A stretch of DNA of 64,000 bases from Octopus bimaculoides (GCF_001194135.2 NC_068984.1:66453950-66517949), one strand, 5' to 3'; shown: positions 19,818-58,990, counted from the first letter of the stretch. The notes: generated from the sequence alone by a model not told the origin. Numbers and translations: made by a program.

Positions 19818-20456
19818 CAGTGTTTCTCAAACTTTTTACCCTTGCGTAACCCCAAAAATAAATTACATGTCTCAAGAAAACCCTGCACAAAAAAAAAAGT
19901 ATAGACATTAACTTTCTCATATTTTATCATCGTAGTCCATGTAGTAAATTTCATATATATATAATAGACTCTCTTGTTGTTAGACAATGTATGAGAGTTT
20001 GAGAATGTCTTACCGAACAACCACACAGATGATTTGTTTATAGTGATCAAATGTTTGTGTAGACATAAGCTTACTCTTGCCATCAAATCAACATTACCTG
20101 TACAGGTGCAACTGGGTGCCACATGTCAGATGTCAAAATGATTGCAGGGCAATGTGAAATGAAGTGCTTTGCTCAAGAACAGAACACAATCCCTGGTCTG
20201 GGAATTGAACCCACAATCTTGCAATTGTGAGTGCAACACTCTAACCACTAAGCCATGTTATATTTTTTTTGATAACATAATAGGTTAGATAGGATGATGT
20301 CTATATTACAATATTACAATAACCAATAATATGTTGTCCATGTGTAGTAATATTACGATCATGAAATTAGCTTTAGCTTATCTCACTTTCTCATGGAACC
20401 CCTAGGAATCTTTGTGGAACCCTAGGGTTCCAGGAAACCCTAGTTGAGAAATGCTG
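19818..20456. mobile_element. hAT (Charlie-like) non-autonomous element with a nested SINE
   Basis: TIRs CAGTGTTTCTCAA / TTGAGAAATGCTG (11/13); 8-bp TSD CTGTAGTT / CAGTAGAT (6/8). Confidence 0.85.
19985..20258 (-). mobile_element. tRNA-headed SINE family F nested in the hAT element
   Basis: GGCTTAGTGGTTAGAGTG...GGTTCAATTCCC...TTGAGCAAAGCACTTC; homolog at 33960-34135. Confidence 0.75.
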
Positions 20457-21499: not shown

Positions 21500-21712
21500 T
21501 TTTCTACAATAGGTACAATATCTGAAATTTGGGGGAGGGGACTAGTCGATCACATCGACCCCAGCATTTCACTGGTACTTATTTCATCGACTCCGAAAGG
21601 ATGTTAGACAAAGTCAACCCTGGCAGGATTTGAACTCAGAATTTAGTGATGGGTGAAATACTGCTAGGCATTTTGTCCAGTGTGTTAACGATTCTGCCAG
21701 TTCGACACCTTA
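21500..21712 (-). mobile_element. SINE family D
   Basis: Full-length family D motifs; retains several CpGs. Confidence 0.85.
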
Positions 21713-21768
21713 GCAATTATAATACTAATAATGATAGTAATCATAATAATGATGATAATAATAATAAT

Positions 21769-22397
21769 CATATTGTCTCTGGCTAAGAAGGAATACATTC
21801 ACAGACACGACAGAGTTGAGACCTATATACACTGGAAGCTATACCAACACTATAGAATAACTACAGGAAAAAGATGGTATAGGCACACCCCAGAAAAGGT
21901 CACAGAAAATGTGAAAGCAATCATATTATGGGATATGCCAATTACCATAGATAGAGAAATTAAGGCCAATAGGCTAGCTATTGCTGTCAGAGATCACCAA
22001 GAAAAACATGCTTTCTAATCAATGTATCAATGCGAACAGATGACAATGTTTCTCTAAAAGAAATGGAGAAACTTTCGAAATACAAAGATTTGGAAACAGA
22101 GGTAAGTTAAATATGGAGCTAAAAACAGAAACAATTCCTATTATAGTAGGTGCCTTAGGTATGATAAAAAATCATTCAGAAAATACATAACAAAAACATC
22201 AGGACTTACAAGTATATATAACATACAGAAAATAGCACTACTAGGCACCGCACACATCCTATATAAAACACTTTCAATACGGTGAAAATAAGAGCACCAC
22301 AACAAACCACAGCACATACCAAAGGCATACAGAGCTGCACTCAGTAGTGCAGTGAAAGTACATGATAAAAATAAGACCACTGAATAATAATAATAAT
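21769..22397 (+). mobile_element. R4/Dong-clade retrotransposon 3' end (restriction-like endonuclease) embedded in (TAA)n
   Basis: LAKKEYIHRHDRV...IHWKL...ILWDMPI...IKANR(LA)I...CFLINVS...DDNVSLKEMEKLSKYKDL...IPIIVGALG; (TAA)n on both sides. Confidence 0.92.
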
Positions 22398-28533: not shown

Positions 28534-28927
28534 AAGCAGTGGCAGCACTAGTATTTTTTAAAATTATTATTTAATCTAAAGAAGAGGATTATGAGAATGA
28601 AGATGCTGAAACCTGAGAATTAGTATAAAAACCTTTTCACCTTTAGGGATTGTCACTAAAGTCTCTCCTGTTGACTGTAACATTTATTCCATTACACCTA
28701 ATAAACCTCTGTTTTGGTTTTCCAAACAAAGCATACAGCATTCAATTTATCACTCCTTAACATATTTTATTCACATTTTGGTTATTGACCTTCTTGATTT
28801 ATTAATACATTTTATTTATTAATTCATTTATTTAATTTAGTTATGTAAATTATACTGATCAAAAATTATTTATAACTCTATATGTAAATGCCTTTGTCTG
28901 CTTATTAAGCAATCTTCTTTAGATTAT

Positions 28928-28969
28928 ACTTTACTGATGAGATCTAAAACTCTGAAACATGTCTGCAGT
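28928..28969 (+). ncRNA. Degenerate minimal type I hammerhead-ribozyme-like motif
   Basis: ACTTTA CTGATGA GA-TCTAAAAC-TC T GAAA C AT GT C TGCAGT; stem I 5/6 pairs, palindromic ACATGT stem III, GUC site. Confidence 0.45.
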
Positions 28970-29274
28970 TGTTTCTTGCCCACAAACACCAATCCTACCT
29001 TCTCCTAAACTTGTAAATGAACCCCAAGAAATTGAATCTTAATTTTTTTAAATTATCTCCCTTTTCCTTGAGTTTTTTTCTTAATATTTGTTAATCATAT
29101 TCAATTAAAAACAGAAATTTCAGTTAAGAGATTTTCTTTCCTTTTCTTTTTTTCTCTCTCTGCATACAACATTCAGTACATCACCTCTTATGATAGAAAT
29201 AGAAATTCTTAAGAATGACTAATAGGCATTGTGATGAAATGGTATCACTCCAAATGATTACTAGTAATAATGGT

Positions 29275-30422: not shown

Positions 30423-31580
30423 GTTTAATGTCCGCTTTTCATGCTGGCATGGGTCGGACTGTTTGACTGAGGACTGGTGAGCCAGATGGCTGCATCGGCT
30501 CCAATCTAATCTGGCAGAGTTTCTACAGCAGGATGGCCTTCCTAACACCAACCACTCTGAGAGTGTAGTGGGTACGTTTATGTGCCACTGACATGAGGGC
30601 CAGTAAGGCGGCCCTGGCAACGGCCATGGCAACGGCCATGCTCAAAAGATGTTTTCTACGTGCCACCTGCACAGGAGCCAGTCCAGCGGCACTGGCAACG
30701 ACCTCACTCGATGTTGTCTTTCATGTGCCAGTAAGGCAATGCTGGTAATGATAATTCTCAAATGGTGCTTTTTACATGCCACCGGCATGGGAGCCAGTCA
30801 GTGGGCCTGGCAACGATCACACTCAGATGGTGCTCTTAGCGCTCCACTAGCATGGATGCCAGTCAAGTGGTTCTGTCATTGAATTTGATTTCGATTTCAC
30901 TTGCCTCAGCAGGTCTTCGCAAGCAGAGTTTAGCGTCCAATGAAGGAAAGGTACACATAAGTGGGCTGGTTACACCACTAGCATAGGCCACGGGTTATGG
31001 TCTCACTTGGTTTGCCAGGTCTTCCAAAGATCTCAATCACTAGTCATTCCCTCGGTGAGGCCTAATGTTCAAAAGTCGTGCTTCACCACGTCATCCCAGG
31101 TCTTCCTGGGTCTACCTCTTCCACAGGTTCCCTCAACCGCTAGGGTGTGACACTTTTTCACACAGCTATCTTCATCCATTCTCACCACATGACCATACCA
31201 GCACAGTCATCTCTCTTGCACACCATATCTGATGCTTCTTAGGTCCAACTTTTCTCTCAAGGTACTTACACTCTGTCAAGTATGCACACTGACATTACAC
31301 ATCCAGCGGAGCATACTGGCTTTGTTTCTTGCAAGCTTACACATGTCCTCAGCAGTCATGGCCCATGTTTCACTGCCATGAAGCATGGCTGTTCGTACAT
31401 ATGCCTCATACAGTCTACCTGTTACTCTGAGTGAGAGGCCCTTTGTCACCAGAAGAGGTAGTGGCTCTCTGAACTTTGCCCAGGCTATTCTTATTTTAGT
31501 AGCTACACTTTCAGAGCACCCACCCCCGCTACTGACTTGGTCACCTAGGTAATGGAAGCTATCAACTACTTCTAGTTTTG
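30386..31580 (-). mobile_element. RTE LINE, 5'-truncated: RT C-terminal remnant, 3' UTR and (GAT)n tail
   Basis: KLEVVDSFHYLGDQVSSGGGCSES...AWAKFRE.LPLL...GRLYEAYVRTAMLHGSETW...ASMLRWMCNVSV; RGRPRKTWDDVVK further 3'. Confidence 0.95.
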
Positions 31581-32948
31581 AATTAAATATTCTGTTACAC
31601 TTAAATTGCAAAGTAATCATTTTTTCTTTCACCTTATAAAAAATACCACCTTACATAAAAATTCATGTAAGGTCACCAGTATTCATACACACACCACATA
31701 TACAAACATTCATTGACACATTGTTTTAATACCTTTGGTTAATTGGTGGGCTAAGGTTTGTCGATGTAGACAAGAGAAAATTTAATATGCAAATGAAATC
31801 CTGAGAAAATGAAGATAGAGATATCACACCGAACCAAAACCTTGTTGTAACAATAAAAACAAAATATGTTAATTGCCATTACACCTGACTAATTAACTAA
31901 TGCTCAGGTGGGTTTCTCAGACAGTTTTATCTTAGCACCAGTGAAGTCTGACATTATCAATTTTGATAAAAGTGACAAGAACTAATGCTTATGGCACCTA
32001 CCAACACATATACATAGCTCACACTATAATTTATATCCTTTGTTATCATGATTATCTCTGACAGACCTAGCCAACCCATCACAAAACTAAAAGTGTGGGT
32101 GAGTGGATGAGGTATCAATTATTGCATCGATTGCTGCCATCAATATCTTTTGTCATTTCCAAAATGCTTTATTTATAATCATTTTCATTGGCTTTTACAT
32201 CAGTTATTCTTTATCTATAAGCTTTTAAAATAGATGTTGGAATATTGCCCTGCCACCAGGAACATTTGCTTTGCATTTCATGCATGCTGTCATTTGCTCT
32301 TATGAGAGGAAGCTAACTGTAGCTGCTATGCCAAAGCCAATTACATTATTAATGGTAAATATGGCTGCAAAAGTATTGTATACTATGTAGTAACAACAAG
32401 GAATGATCAGTGAAATGAGTTGCATTGAATTATTTAAGAATACCTTTAAAATTTGCCACCTACAACATATCAAAGCCTGATAATACAAACAAGCAATTCT
32501 AGATTGCTACAATGATGATGATGATGGTGATGATGATGATGGATGATAAAACACTTAGTGCAATGCTTTGTTCTTACTGGACTGAGAATGTGACCCAGCT
32601 TTGGTTCTCAATTAGAATTCTTCACTTAGATTCTATCATTAAAATTAAATTCTAGAACACCAGGAATGGTAACAAAAGCATCAACAACAGATCCAATCTT
32701 TACAGCTGCAGTAACATTACCAATAATGTCAATGATGAATGTCTATGTGGTTTATGTTTTCAGAGGATATTTAATAGATATGTTTAGTAGATTACTTAAC
32801 CTACTAGAAATAACAGACAAATCTCCGTAGAAACACCATCTACCATCTTAGAAAGAAAGGCATATGGGACAATTTAGTTACATATATATATATATATATA
32901 TATACATTTTGCTGGCAAGAAAGTAAATTATGAATGCAGTAAAGCTCG

Positions 32949-33013
32949 CAGCTACAGGACTTGAACCTGAACCCCTCAGATACTGGCTGAATGCTCTAGC
33001 CATTAAGCTGAAC
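32949..33013 (-). pseudogene. tRNA-like sequence (anticodon loop CC-AGT-AT)
   Basis: TCAGCTTAATGGCTAGAGC A-box, TCAG/CTGA stem with 7-nt loop, CAGG-TTCAAGT-CCTG T-arm; acceptor stem poor. Confidence 0.5.
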
Positions 33014-33225
33014 AACCCCTACCCCCCAACAACAATTACCATCAAATTTAATACTAAATTGTAGCTTTCAAATGAGACAACAGTTCATTAAAAGACTTTG
33101 GAAGGATCGAATAGGGTTGGGATTTTGCAGACAAGAAAGTAAATTTCAAATGCAATAAAGCTATAAGGACAGCAGAGAATGATTGGGTATTTACCCTAAT
33201 AAGATGGGAAGAAGCTGCCAGAAGG

Positions 33226-33292
33226 CAGCTATGGGACTTGAACCCATAACTGTCAGATGCTGACTGAGTGCTCTAGCCATGAAGCTAAATGG
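33226..33292 (-). pseudogene. tRNA-like sequence (anticodon loop TC-AGC-AT)
   Basis: TTAGCTTCATGGCTAGAGC, TCAG/CTGA stem, ATGGG-TTCAAGT-CCCAT T-arm. Confidence 0.5.
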
Positions 33293-33959
33293 TCTCCTCG
33301 ACAACAATTACCATCAAATTTAATAGTAAATTATAGCTTCAAATCTGACAACATATTACAAACAATGTATCTATATATATTTAAATTTTGTACTGGAAGT
33401 AACTCTATAAGGTAAACATTATCAATGTGAAATACTTAAAGTGCATTGCTAAATTCTTTTAGGCTATGGTGTTTTGTCCAGAGAATGTCCTCTTAAAGAT
33501 GTAGGTGGTTAAGAAGCATAGCATACTACAAAGCCAGACTAAATAAACTGCCCAAGAGGTGAACAATAATGATAGATATCAATATTTCATAGTTATTTCT
33601 GCTTATTGGTGCTGTATACTTGATTCATTCTCAAAGCATATTCAAATTGCTGGCCTAAAGTATGTGCAGATAATGTAAAATATATATGCTGATGTGCAAG
33701 GGCCATTGCACAAGTAAAACAAAATTCAAATTTTGTGTTTGAAACAGCCCCATAATGTAAACATTATCAATGTCACAATTCTGCATGCCATATGAATCAA
33801 GTATATGGCAATGAGAGCAGAAATAACTGAAATATTGATATCTATAGTTCTCATTCACCTCCAGGTTGTTTCTTTTCACTTAGCTTTGTATGATGAGTGA
33901 TTATGATTGACTTTCTTTTCGAAGATGATGTATGAGTGTTCAACCTTTTTGTCAAGTGA

Positions 33960-34135
33960 CCTCCACAAAGGATTTGCTTATAATGATCAAATGTATGTGC
34001 TGTACATTACTTTACTGCCCCCATCAAATCTACATTGCCTGAACAGGTGCACAGTATGATCGCAGAGCAATGTGAGATGAAGTACTTTGCTCAGTAATAA
34101 TGCACCACCTGGTCTAGGAATTGAAACTATAATTT
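33960..34135 (-). mobile_element. SINE family F fragment lying inside the disrupted hammerhead repeat unit
   Basis: Homologous to 20020-20230 (GAGCAATGTGAGATGAAGTACTTTGCTCA...GGAATTGAAAC). Confidence 0.7.
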
Positions 34136-34350
34136 TCCCTCAAAAAAATACTGCAACCTAAAAGCTTTTAACAATATACATACATTAAGCATGTGACATT
34201 GTTAATATTTACATTGTATATCTGCTTCTAACACAAAATTGAATTTGGTTTATTTGTGAGGTACTGTTGCACGTCAAGAGATCGATTTTATAATATCTGT
34301 AAACACTTCAGGCTTGTGATTCAAATTTGTATCAAGGGTGAATTGAGTAT

Positions 34351-34397
34351 ATGACACTGATGAGCAAAAATAACTGTGAAATATCAATATCTGTCAT
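34351..34397 (+). ncRNA. Type I hammerhead ribozyme, copy 1 (intact core)
   Basis: ATGACA CTGATGA GCA-AAAATAAC-TGT GAAA TAT-CA-ATA T C^ TGTCAT; 6-bp stem I, AUC site after 34391. Confidence 0.75.
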
Positions 34398-34578
34398 TTC
34401 TGTTCATCTCCAGGGTAGTTCATTTCTCCCATCTTTAAAGTATTACATGTTTTTCAACACTACATCTTTAATAGCACCTTCTCAGGATGAAATACCATAG
34501 CCTAAAAGTGTTTAACAACACACATACATTGAGTATGTGACATCAGTTAGTATATATGCATATACAAGAATTGAGTAT

Positions 34579-34625
34579 ATGGCACCAATGAGCAGAAATA
34601 ACTGTGAAATGTCAATATCTGTCAT
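34579..34625 (+). ncRNA. Type I hammerhead ribozyme, copy 2 (core mutated to CCAATGA)
   Basis: ATGGCA CCAATGA GCAG-AAATAA-CTGT GAAA TGT-CA-ATA T C^ TGTCAT. Confidence 0.65.
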
Positions 34626-34899
34626 TTTCTTTCATCTGAAGAGTAGTTAATTTCTTCTGATTTTGAAGTGTTACATGTTTTTCAACACACTACATCTTTA
34701 ATGAGACCTTCCCAGGATTAAATACCACACCTTGAAAATGTTCAACAATACACATGCATTGAGTATGTGACATTGGTAATGTATATGTATATAGAAGAAT
34801 TGGTCTTGATGTCTGAATCGCCATTGATCACAGGTCTGCTTAATAAAGGCTGTCTTGCAACTAAACAACAACAAATGAATGAACATGTTTATATGGCTG

Positions 34900-47959: not shown

Positions 47960-48895
47960 GAAATCCTGTATACTGATGACGTATGGAAGAGTCAATGAAA
48001 GACTCAGAAGTGAAATTCCAGAGGCAGAAGCAAAACCTAGAATCGAAAGGTCTCAGGGTAGTAAACTTAGTAAACACCACAGTTTCAGTATGAAGTATAG
48101 AAGACAGGACAGTACTGCCATCAAGGAAATGACCATACTTAATACTGAGAAAAAGAGTTGGTAGAAACACCATATGGTGAACTGTGATCACAGACTTGTT
48201 GATGGCAAAATAGATTTTGTGTGCAGCAGATGTACAGGAGAGGTTAGCAGTCAGTGCAGTTGTACTACAAATTCCCTTCGGTGTTCAAGAAGGTCTGTAG
48301 AAGTAATTGATAGCTTCTTTTATCTAAGCAGTGTAATTGGCATTGAAGGAGTGCACTTTGAAAGTATAGTAGACAAAGTTAAAAAGTTCAGTGGGATATT
48401 ACCTCTGCTGGTAGCAAAGGGATTCTGTCTTCTGGCTGAGAGTAGATTGTATGTTACATTGTCATGATGTGGGTACCGACATGCAAAAGTTGGAGGGAAA
48501 TGAAGCAAGCATGCTCCAATGGATGTATAATGTCACTAAGCATGACTGACACAACACAGATGAGCTGATAGATAAACTAGATATAAGAGGAATCAGTTTC
48601 AGTGTGAAAGAATGGAGATTGCACTAATAGGGACGTGATGTATATTGGAAAAAAGAGATGGGTAAATAAGGGCCATGATATCCAAGTGGAAGGACATTGT
48701 GAAAGAGGAAGACTAGGAAGAGATGTGCAAAAGTAGTAAAAGCTGGTTTCAAGAATTTTTTGTTTTTTACCCTCACAAAGGAAATGGCAAAGAACATAAG
48801 AAATAGCAAGAGACTGCTGTGGAAAAGAACCATCCAACCGATACAATCATGGGAAAGTGTATATAAAATATGAGGATGATGACGATAATATATAT
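47960..48895 (+). mobile_element. Decayed RTE LINE 3' part (RT C-terminus, Cys-rich insertion remnant, short GAT tail)
   Basis: RK.VGRN.IW, DFVCSRC, SVEVIDSFFYLS, ILPLLVAKG, EASMLQWMYNV, RGRLGK; ends GAGGATGATGACGAT. Confidence 0.85.
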
Positions 48896-55942: not shown

Positions 55943-57454
55943 AGACTGAGTTCTGGAAGTGCTGTGTATTATGTCCTCCACACCCACACATTACATTAAT
56001 CCACTTGCCTCCAATGAACCAAACTACATCTCATTATGCACTACACTTTTCTCTCTCTCTCTCTCTCTATCTCTTTTCCCCCACTCCTTTCTCCTTTATA
56101 CCAATGCCACTTTGTCATCTCTCTTTCTCTCCCCCACCCCAGCCAACTGTATCATTGCTATCTTGTCAATCCCTATCTACTTGTGTTCACCACTCACTGC
56201 ATTTCCTTCTCTTCCACCTCCCTTGTGAACCTCCTACTCTATTACCTTGTCCAATCAATCCGTACCACTCCACTTACATTCAACTCCCTGTAGGTTGAGA
56301 GTATGCCCTCCTATAACTTCACCACCATCTCTCTCACTCCCCCTGTTTCTTTTCCCTCCATTTTCTCTCATTCTGAACAAGGTAACCATGTAGCTCCTCT
56401 ACAACAAGAAAGTTGTTGATGTTAGGAACCATACAAAAGCTAGGCGCAGCCTTCTGGCTTGCTAGCTCCAGTCAAACAAAATGGATATTAAATGATGATG
56501 ATGAAGATGATGATATATATATAGAGAGATAGATATAGATACACACACACAGACACACACACACACACACACAGACACACACACACACACACATGCACTA
56601 TTTAAGTAGATAGATGTTAAAATATAAATAACATCCTAAACCATAGAAAGTTTCTTTAAAATTCGGCATGTCATCAGCAAGATGAAAATAGATATAATGA
56701 CATAATATTCAAGTGTTCCTGTTTCTGTAAGTCATTAGATATCTTATTATTGGAAATCAGTAAGAATTTGAAAATTTTTCAAAGAATTTGAAGGAAAGTT
56801 CCATGTTATAATCATATTTAACATATATCCAGCCAATATCGAGGCATTTTAAAGAATTAATGATGATTTATTCAATTCTGGCTGCTACCATTGGTTTGTA
56901 TAGTTTATATTATTCTGAATCCATAAGAAATTGAAGTAATGTTCCATGTTTTGAAGATAATTTTATGAATATCAAGAACATAGTAATTTCTCATATTATA
57001 TAAACCTACAAATTTCAGCAACCAGAATATGGACCATGCTCAATGTTAAGAAAAAAGAACATAAAACTGTAATATATATTATTATTATCAAATACATTAT
57101 ACATGTATACATATAAATTCTTCAGCACCACCTTAACTCTGTGTATATGTGTGCATTCATACATATTTTTCAGAGATATTAAATTCCTGGAGAGGTTTTA
57201 AATCCAGTAGGTACATGTTGTTTCAGTTCTTCTGTGTTTTTAATGATTTTTTTTTTCTGTTGCCTGGAGAATGGTGGGCTTTGACAGATCATACTCTCCA
57301 TGATACATGTAAAAAAAATGGAGCTTTGTTTGCTGGTTACATGCTTCAGGTTATTATTTATAATGTTACAATGGGATGATTATTAGATATCATATCTGAT
57401 ATGCTATGAAACAAATGCAGATAACTCCCCATATATATCATCATCATCATCATT

Positions 57455-58014: not shown

Positions 58015-58599
58015 ATGGGCAATTATGGAGTGAATTTTAGGGCTTATAAATCTAATATTTTCCTATCCTTCCTCAATACCGGTTCCCATATGCTATTCAT
58101 ACCTGCACTCGGTCTGCTTAGGAGGTTGTTGTGTCCTAGCGTATGTGCTGCTTTTTTTAGTTTTCGTATTTTACAGTGGTGTTCTCTGTCTATAATTTTA
58201 CCTTCATCCCACAGTAGGAGGTGGTCTCCATTTTTCCATACATGATCAGCTATACCCGATTTATCAATATCTCCTCATGTCATAGCTTTGCGATGTTCCT
58301 CTACTCTTATTTTGAGGGGGTGGGTAGCATGTTTCGCCTTTGTATGACCTACAACAGCTACATGGGATGGAGCACACACAGTTTTTGGTAAAATTCTCTT
58401 CTACTGGTGGTTTTACTCGGAGGAGATATTTGTGAAGTGTCGTATTACTCTTGAATACTGTCCTGATGTCATATGGGCCGCATATCTTTTGTATCTTTGT
58501 GTAGGTCATACAAAGGTGAAACATGCCGCTGAAATATCTGATGTCAGGCAAAGCCAAATAGGTGGTGACAAAACAGCTGTACCAAAATGTCTCACACTC

Positions 58600-58990
58600 A
58601 TTGACATTTACCTATAAATGGGTAGGTTGTATGTTGTTTGTGTGTGAAGTGTGGTGCTATGTGGTAGACTAGAGATGTCCATTCAATGCAGAAAATGTAT
58701 GAAGGTTGGAAGAAAACGAAGCAAGCATGTCATACACACAGTGGATGTGCAATGTTAGTGTGTATGGGTGATGTGTTACAGAAGAGCTGAATGAAAATCT
58801 AGGTATAAGAAGAAATAAATGTAATGTACAGACAGACAACTGTATGTGGACATACAGCTGATGCATATGGCTGGTAACAGATGGGTAAAGACATGTTTGA
58901 AGATAAGGTGGATGGAAACCAAGATGACAAAGGCAAACATGAACAAAGCTGGGAAAAGCTGATTTTAGGATGTTAAATTTCCCACGGATG
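58600..58990 (+). mobile_element. Decayed RTE LINE ORF fragment
   Basis: SVVLCG...AENV*RLEENEASM...WMCNVSV...ENLGIRR. Confidence 0.7.

Follow-up and report, generated by a model that had tools for sequence, protein, structure and literature searches.

Tandem units of 150-450 bp that are low in GC, non-coding and provided with type I hammerhead ribozymes are known from animals ranging from molluscs to arthropods. In the retrozymes of this class, multimeric transcripts undergo self-cleavage, the products are circularized, and reverse transcription is supplied in trans. A 64,000-nucleotide (nt) stretch of one strand of Octopus bimaculoides DNA (GCF_001194135.2 NC_068984.1:66453950-66517949; the whole stretch is hereafter called the window, and positions are counted from its first nucleotide) contains a repeat cluster in which an initial annotation had recognized a retrozyme-like system of ~228-nt units with type I hammerheads. 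Our analysis indicates that the cluster is probably the fossil of an inserted retroelement, short and non-coding, that carried a type I hammerhead and belonged to the class of the metazoan non-LTR (long terminal repeat) retrozymes and Penelope-associated elements. Judged by their sequences, the copies found here look inactive; they appear to be a dead relic, and activity today is not expected. Apart from a survey of Penelope-like elements, the literature searched yielded nothing on hammerheads or retrozymes in cephalopods.

Four unit copies, all within 33381-34803, were located by repeat finding and by a BLAST search of the window with the unit, and BLAST detected no further copy in the rest of the window. 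Copy 1 (u1; 34340-34567, plus strand) adjoins copy 2 (u2; 34568-34803, plus strand), and the two are 82-83% identical over 228 nt. Beyond copy 2, the array runs ~7 nt into another unit and then stops. Copy 3 was confirmed to be decayed and split by an insert that contains a repeat like a short interspersed nuclear element (SINE), with its head (5' part) at 33794-33877 and its tail (3' part) at 34146-34222, both on the plus strand. A 117-nt spacer (34223-34339, plus strand) lies between copy 3 and copy 1. The fourth copy (33381-33777, minus strand), which the initial annotation did not contain, is inverted and 5'-truncated. In minus-strand order, it consists of a tail (33777-33729), a spacer (33728-33627), a full unit (33626-33399) and ~20 nt of the next spacer, and it is separated by a gap of 16 nt from the upstream end of the direct array at 33794. 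Since 33777..33446 (minus strand) aligned in one block to 34192..34518 (plus strand; 72%), tail, spacer and unit make up a conserved composite. The native period may be ~346 nt (unit plus spacer) rather than 228 nt, because the 117-nt spacer recurs in the inverted copy; the 228-nt period described earlier is that of the adjacent u1/u2 pair. Tandem Repeats Finder reported no array for the cluster, because the adjacent units number only two and are diverged.

The hammerhead motif of copy 1 is located at 34351-34397. Its two outer segments, ATGACA and TGTCAT, form a 6-bp helix I, between which follow the core CTGATGA, helix II with its loop (GCAA-AAATAA-CTGT), GAAA, helix III (ATAT-CA-ATAT) and a C residue corresponding to C17, at 34391, after which cleavage is predicted. 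This arrangement matches the canonical layout of metazoan type I hammerheads (PMC4209133). The motif relic of copy 2 occupies 34579-34625, and its predicted C17, at 34619, is 228 nt away from that of copy 1. All of the coordinates and strings of the initial annotation were thus present in the sequence, including the intact core and 6-bp stem I of copy 1 and the altered core of copy 2 (CCAATGA) with its stems kept. Helix I is 6 bp in both copies, as in validated ribozymes. Helix II, which is 4 bp in validated ribozymes, is likewise 4 bp in copy 2 (GCAG/CUGU); the stem II reported for copy 1 is present, but consists of only three pairs plus an A/C mismatch. Helix III of copies 1 and 2 is the palindrome AUAUCAAUAU, and its 10-nt ancestral form AUAUCGAUAU compares with ACAGUACUGU in coral. 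Position 17 is C here and in validated ribozymes (A in axolotl Ax353), which gives the cleavage triplet AUC. Across the four copies, 86% of the cells of the motif paired in register, compared with 27-54% when the partners were slid.

The Schistosoma Sm-alpha/Sm1 ribozyme (N79, PMC12550524) and copy 1 agree in the length of every segment (4+6+7+4+6+4+4 nt), starting with the helix I bulge and ending with GAAA. Both carry GUAY directly 5' of helix I (GUAU here and GUAC in Sm1) and a 6-nt, A-rich loop 2 containing AAAUA (AAAUAA here and CAAAUA in Sm1). As regards tertiary contacts between loop 1 and loop 2, GUAU and the A-rich loop 2 show a resemblance to Sm1 in sequence. Unlike Sm1, the octopus motif has AU-rich stems and no bulge in the 3' strand of helix I, and a model built on Sm1 and Sm-alpha gave it only 16.7 bits. 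Sm-alpha is SINE-like, whereas the unit has no RNA polymerase III (pol III) B box; only a loose A-box-like match was seen in it.

The significance of the motif was evaluated with a hand-written descriptor and with covariance models. The type I descriptor specified CUGANGA, helix II of >=3 bp, GAA, a helix III of >=3 bp closed by A15.1-U16.1, a non-G H17 and >=5/6 pairs in helix I. Its sole match on either strand of the window was 34351-34397, and a first-order Markov null expects 0.02 matches per 64 kb. The covariance models, R1 and R2, were built from published ribozymes independently of the window, and the E-values obtained with them are roughly calibrated. With R1, which consisted of Schistosoma Sm1/N79 (PMC12550524) and the Sm-alpha crystal construct, the first rank went to copy 1 as a full-length match (16.7 bits, E about 0.04), and the fourth to copy 2. 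R2 was made from five ribozymes whose sequences all came from papers, namely N79 (trimmed of the engineered inner portion of its helix III), coral Amil224, mussel Mg353 and axolotl Ax353 and Ax330 (the last four from the supplement of PMC7229834). R2 gave copy 1 a score of 24.3 bits (E about 7e-6); that of copy 2 was 10.3 bits. In ~274 kb of real sequence scanned with R2 (both strands of the window and of four loci, L001-L004, described below), only three matches exceeded 14.5 bits: copy 1, a relic at 28924-28973 (26.2 bits) and a Penelope-associated ribozyme in L003 (34.5 bits). The score of the last demonstrates that R2 detects genuine hammerheads. By these models from published ribozymes, the motif is significantly hammerhead-like, and we conclude from this likeness that it descends from a hammerhead.

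The relic at 28924-28973 (plus strand) contains CUGAUGA, GAAAC, the helix III palindrome ACAUGU and C17, with 5/6 pairs in helix I and without helix II. It is solitary, lies outside any tandem repeat and has no sequence relationship with the 228-nt unit. This suggests that the genome contains scattered hammerhead relics from more than one family.

Metazoan non-LTR retrozymes (Cervera & de la Pena 2020, PMC7229834; Amil224, Mg353, Ax330/Ax353) are tandem units of 170-400 bp, non-coding and low in GC, with one type I hammerhead each, and the unit examined here resembles them in this. A 6-bp helix I, a 4-bp helix II with a 5-6-nt loop and a palindromic helix III are common to them and the locus, and neither has LTRs, a primer-binding site or a polypurine tract. 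The longest open reading frame (ORF) inside the unit encodes 49 aa, and a 937-aa concatenated six-frame translation of u1 and u2 had no match at E<=0.01 among 5.8 billion proteins; the earlier statement that no ORF or protein explains the unit was thus upheld. The GC content of the unit (33%) is not discriminating for this class, because that of the whole window is 33.6%. Retrozymes co-exist with Penelope-like elements, and a Penelope-type relic is also found in the window. On the other hand, the locus differs from published retrozymes in having only two adjacent units together with scattered and inverted relics, a core intact in one copy out of four, an ancestor that was probably C4, and a helix II closed by G.U. 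In addition, published retrozyme monomers are highly self-paired and the monomer at the locus is not, and no sequence similarity was observed outside the conserved core. The tandem type I unit of newt satellite 2 and axolotl HHR_Amex1 has a weak palindromic helix III implying double-hammerhead cleavage, as here. However, these vertebrate repeats are ~330 bp long, richer in GC, present in 10^4-10^5 copies and transcribed, whereas the octopus unit is known from four genomic copies.

Several observations weigh against the retrozyme interpretation. The canonical core CUGAUGA...GAAA was found in copy 1 alone, that is, in one of the four copies; the corresponding sequences are CCAATGA in copy 2, A-TGA-GA (one deletion, with helix I broken) in the relic of copy 3 at 33805-33848, and CCAATAA in the relic of the inverted copy at 33615-33569 (minus strand). 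At the core end of helix II, where G-C (G10.1-C11.1) is the usual closing pair, 4/4 copies have G.U. It had been proposed that TGAAA derives from CGAAA, but all four copies read TGAAA and the CA state occurs in none, so helix II closes with G.U and not with G-C. The hammerhead fold of copy 1 alone was calculated at +0.3 kcal/mol, compared with a minimum free energy (MFE) of -4.6 for a competing hairpin. The MFE of a circular 228-nt monomer was -37.8, compared with -34.3 +/- 3.8 for shuffled sequences (z = -0.9); the decay of old copies could be the cause of this unremarkable structure. No compensatory changes were present among the four copies, and the covariation that had been put forward as a check is thus lacking. 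The Rfam hammerhead families gave no match in the window at the gathering threshold, nor in a 1.6-kb or a 101-nt segment at E<=10. The calibration of the E-values for R1 and R2 is, as stated, rough. Furthermore, no copies outside the cluster were found in the collections searched. Metagenome pattern scans for the unit returned 0 matches in the first case and 2 matches in the second, the latter to the 21-mer itself only. The earlier retrozyme reading is partly supported. The non-coding, AT-rich unit of retrozyme size, the R1 and R2 scores, the Penelope-like arrangement and the endonuclease relic in the window (see below) speak for it, and the single intact core, the silence of Rfam, the lack of covariation and the monomer, which is not unusually self-paired, speak against it.

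The competing hairpin of copy 1 spans 34358-34386, where UGAUG of the core pairs with UAUCA of the 5' half of helix III. In the inferred ancestor, its partners are both CpG sites (CGAUG/UAUCG), and the pairing is kept in 3/4 copies, which is the expectation of random CpG decay.

The core of the local ancestor is a further point on the same side. Alignment of the units revealed eight dinucleotide columns in which the copies fall into just two states, related by a transition at each of the two positions. The CA/TG pattern characteristic of CpG decay is seen in seven of the eight, and not a single CpG remains in any copy. Loop III belongs to this pattern, which supports the CG that had been suggested as its ancestral state. 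Core positions 4-5 form another CA/TG column, with TG in copies 1 and 3 and CA in copy 2 and the inverted copy. The Kimura two-parameter distance between u1 and u2 was 0.20, making them the younger pair, and the pair, copy 3 and the inverted copy were mutually separated by 0.28-0.38, which corresponds to a star of three lineages. Because the TG/CA split cuts across this tree, CG would have stood at positions 4-5 both in the common ancestor and in the ancestor of u1 and u2, and the founder core would have been CCGAUGA. The core of the local ancestor was thus most likely the non-canonical CCGAUGA, and the CUGAUGA of copy 1 is probably a chance CpG-to-TpG reversion, a decay product rather than a survivor. 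The inserted template probably had a dead core already, by a T-to-C change at position 4 (U4 to C) that created the CpG. To our knowledge, U4 is invariant among natural hammerheads, and CUGANGA is demanded by every published descriptor. In the classical mutagenesis by Ruffner and colleagues in 1990, the change of U4 to C reportedly impaired cleavage strongly.

The first alternative is that the cluster is a fragment of a Penelope-like element, either its pseudo-LTRs (pLTRs) or an internally deleted non-autonomous derivative, with the hammerhead being the pLTR ribozyme. Insertions of Penelope-like elements typically consist of partial tandems in direct orientation whose upstream end adjoins an inverted, 5'-truncated copy (PMC8557442). 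The cluster displays this hallmark, with an inverted tail-spacer-unit (33777..33381) beside the direct array, and unit-spacer-unit is possibly part of a larger repeat. The hammerheads of Penelope pLTRs, like that of the locus, have a helix III whose short, palindromic form suits action as a dimer (PMC4209133, PMC8557442). In addition, Penelope-type relics are present in the window. A relic of a Penelope-type C-terminal endonuclease is located at 58062-58611 (minus strand), 23 kb from the cluster, and was confirmed by tblastn. Eight homologues of it (P0001-P0008) were obtained, all from the ENA assembly ERZ21867824. In L001, the homologue stands after an ORF with RVT_1, and in L003, a hammerhead at 2161-2213 (34.5 bits with R2) lies 560 nt downstream of the Penelope-type endonuclease ORF and is followed by a (TA)n microsatellite. 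This hammerhead, from a related assembly, also has the layout of 6 bp, 4 bp and a near-palindromic helix III. Pfam gave nothing significant for the endonuclease-like and reverse transcriptase-like ORFs of the window, including 31279-31650 and 21689-22015, or for the endonuclease homologues. The label Penelope or GIY-YIG for the relic was therefore inferred from context, namely the RVT_1 neighbor and the downstream hammerhead, and from the motif ...VYSIPCSCGKVYKGET...EH... recognized by eye.

Nevertheless, no ORF or coding relic of a reverse transcriptase-endonuclease (RT-EN; GIY-YIG) was detected in or beside the cluster, which sets it apart from Penelope elements. The unit showed no similarity to the flanks of the endonuclease relic or to L001-L004, and no unit copies were found in the 73 kb around the endonuclease homologues (L001-L004, from a different organism) or in the whole set L001-L006. 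Moreover, most metazoan Penelope hammerheads that have been published belong to the 'minimal' type, in which helix II is long and helix I is short (PMC4209133), whereas the canonical 6/4 layout seen here is typical of retrozymes. It is because of these canonical helix lengths and the absence of a coding relic that a retrozyme is tentatively favored, from this one locus, over a Penelope pLTR derivative, which we regard as an unlikely origin for the cluster.

The second alternative is that the motif is a chance look-alike: an AT-rich local tandem and inverted duplication would have contained a near-motif, CCGATGA...GAAA, with short AU-rich stems that arose by accident, and CpG decay would have perfected one of its cores. 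The non-canonical core inferred for the ancestor, the silence of Rfam, the lack of covariation, the weak fold and the failure to see the family elsewhere in the collections searched are all in keeping with such an origin, as is the E-value of about 0.04 given by the Sm1-only model. The site was also picked by a reader from an unknown number of windows, and it is mainly for this reason that chance retains a small but appreciable probability. However, the R2 score of 24.3 bits is about 10 bits above background, and without position 4 it would still be ~18-20 bits by our estimate. The motif agrees with validated ribozymes in the lengths of its helices and loops, in the GUAU bulge and in having a palindromic helix III, and it lies in a repeat of the right size with a Penelope-like architecture, a context that makes up only ~2% of the window. 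We consider a look-alike improbable for these reasons.

A different view of the ancestor, that CCGAUGA is a core that works in a retrozyme family specific to the lineage, as a natural C4 hammerhead that still undergoes processing and is perhaps slow, dimer-dependent or protein-assisted, is very improbable. If such a core were functional, a CpG-rich motif (>=4-5 CpGs per 60 nt) would have been retained in active masters and lost only in dead copies. Finally, a C/D box small nucleolar RNA (snoRNA)-like gene or relic over 34351-34397 can be dismissed as extremely improbable: the strongest of the weak Rfam matches were to snoZ169, SNORD109A and snoU54 (12-15 bits, E 2-5), far below the gathering scores (35-55 bits), they arise because UGAUGA of the hammerhead core is read as a C box and a terminal stem is present, and the D box (CUGA) is absent before the 3' stem strand, which reads CUGU.

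According to the retroelement interpretation, which we favor, a living element of this class would have produced a multimeric transcript with a hammerhead folded in each unit. Since helix III is short and palindromic, neighboring motifs would probably have paired as a double hammerhead. The RNA would have cut itself after the AUC triplet, the monomers would have been circularized by a tRNA-type ligase, and a reverse transcriptase acting in trans, most plausibly that of a Penelope-like element, would have copied them into DNA. At the locus itself, the direct and inverted copies would both go back to a single old integration of the Penelope type, in which a multi-unit RNA (unit-spacer-unit) was inserted. 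A later duplication of copy 1 at the DNA level would have generated the spacer-less 228-nt u1/u2 tandem, and a SINE would have inserted into copy 3 after the integration. Every CpG would have decayed since then.

The foreign insert that splits copy 3 (33878-34145, minus strand) is 268 nt long and contains a tRNA-derived SINE-like repeat at ~33964-34140 in minus orientation, with the B-box-like sequence GGTTCAATTCC. A relative of this repeat was found at 20024-20220 (about 20010-20240; 69%). The missing middle of copy 3 was not recovered from the insert, as its alignment to the middle of the unit scored no better than shuffled sequences. No target-site duplication was recognizable at 33381 and 34803. 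Further tRNA-derived SINE-like copies are located to the left of the cluster at 32946-33082 and 33225-33353 (minus strand), 277 nt apart, and the Rfam tRNA score of 32946-33017 was 29 bits, exactly the gathering score.

Elsewhere in the window, R2 gave a weak hammerhead-like match at 56629-56687 (minus strand; 14.5 bits, E about 0.02), containing CUGAUGA and GAAAC. This match shares its strand with the endonuclease relic, lies ~1.4 kb downstream of it and could represent either the decayed pLTR ribozyme of that element or a product of chance. The stop-free segments 31279-31650 (minus strand), 48165-48464 (plus strand) and 21689-22015 (plus strand) resemble, by eye, C-terminal fragments of non-LTR reverse transcriptases. 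A search of protein collections with two ORFs of the window returned no record. The whole window is strongly depleted in CpG (observed/expected 0.22) and rich in (TA)n, (CA)n and (CT)n microsatellites, and it includes three runs of N with a total of ~1,050 N.

Taken alone, the locus is not a new system but an inactive fossil from a class that is already well described. It does provide a caution for motif hunting in methylated, CpG-depleted genomes, where an 'intact' core that stands alone beside decayed ones is not necessarily a survivor, because a T-to-C change at position 4 makes a CpG that decays back to TG about half the time. If the family were confirmed genome-wide, it would add the octopus lineage to the animals with hammerhead-bearing tandem retroelements, and the unit would serve as a probe for the expression of small circular RNAs made by ribozymes.

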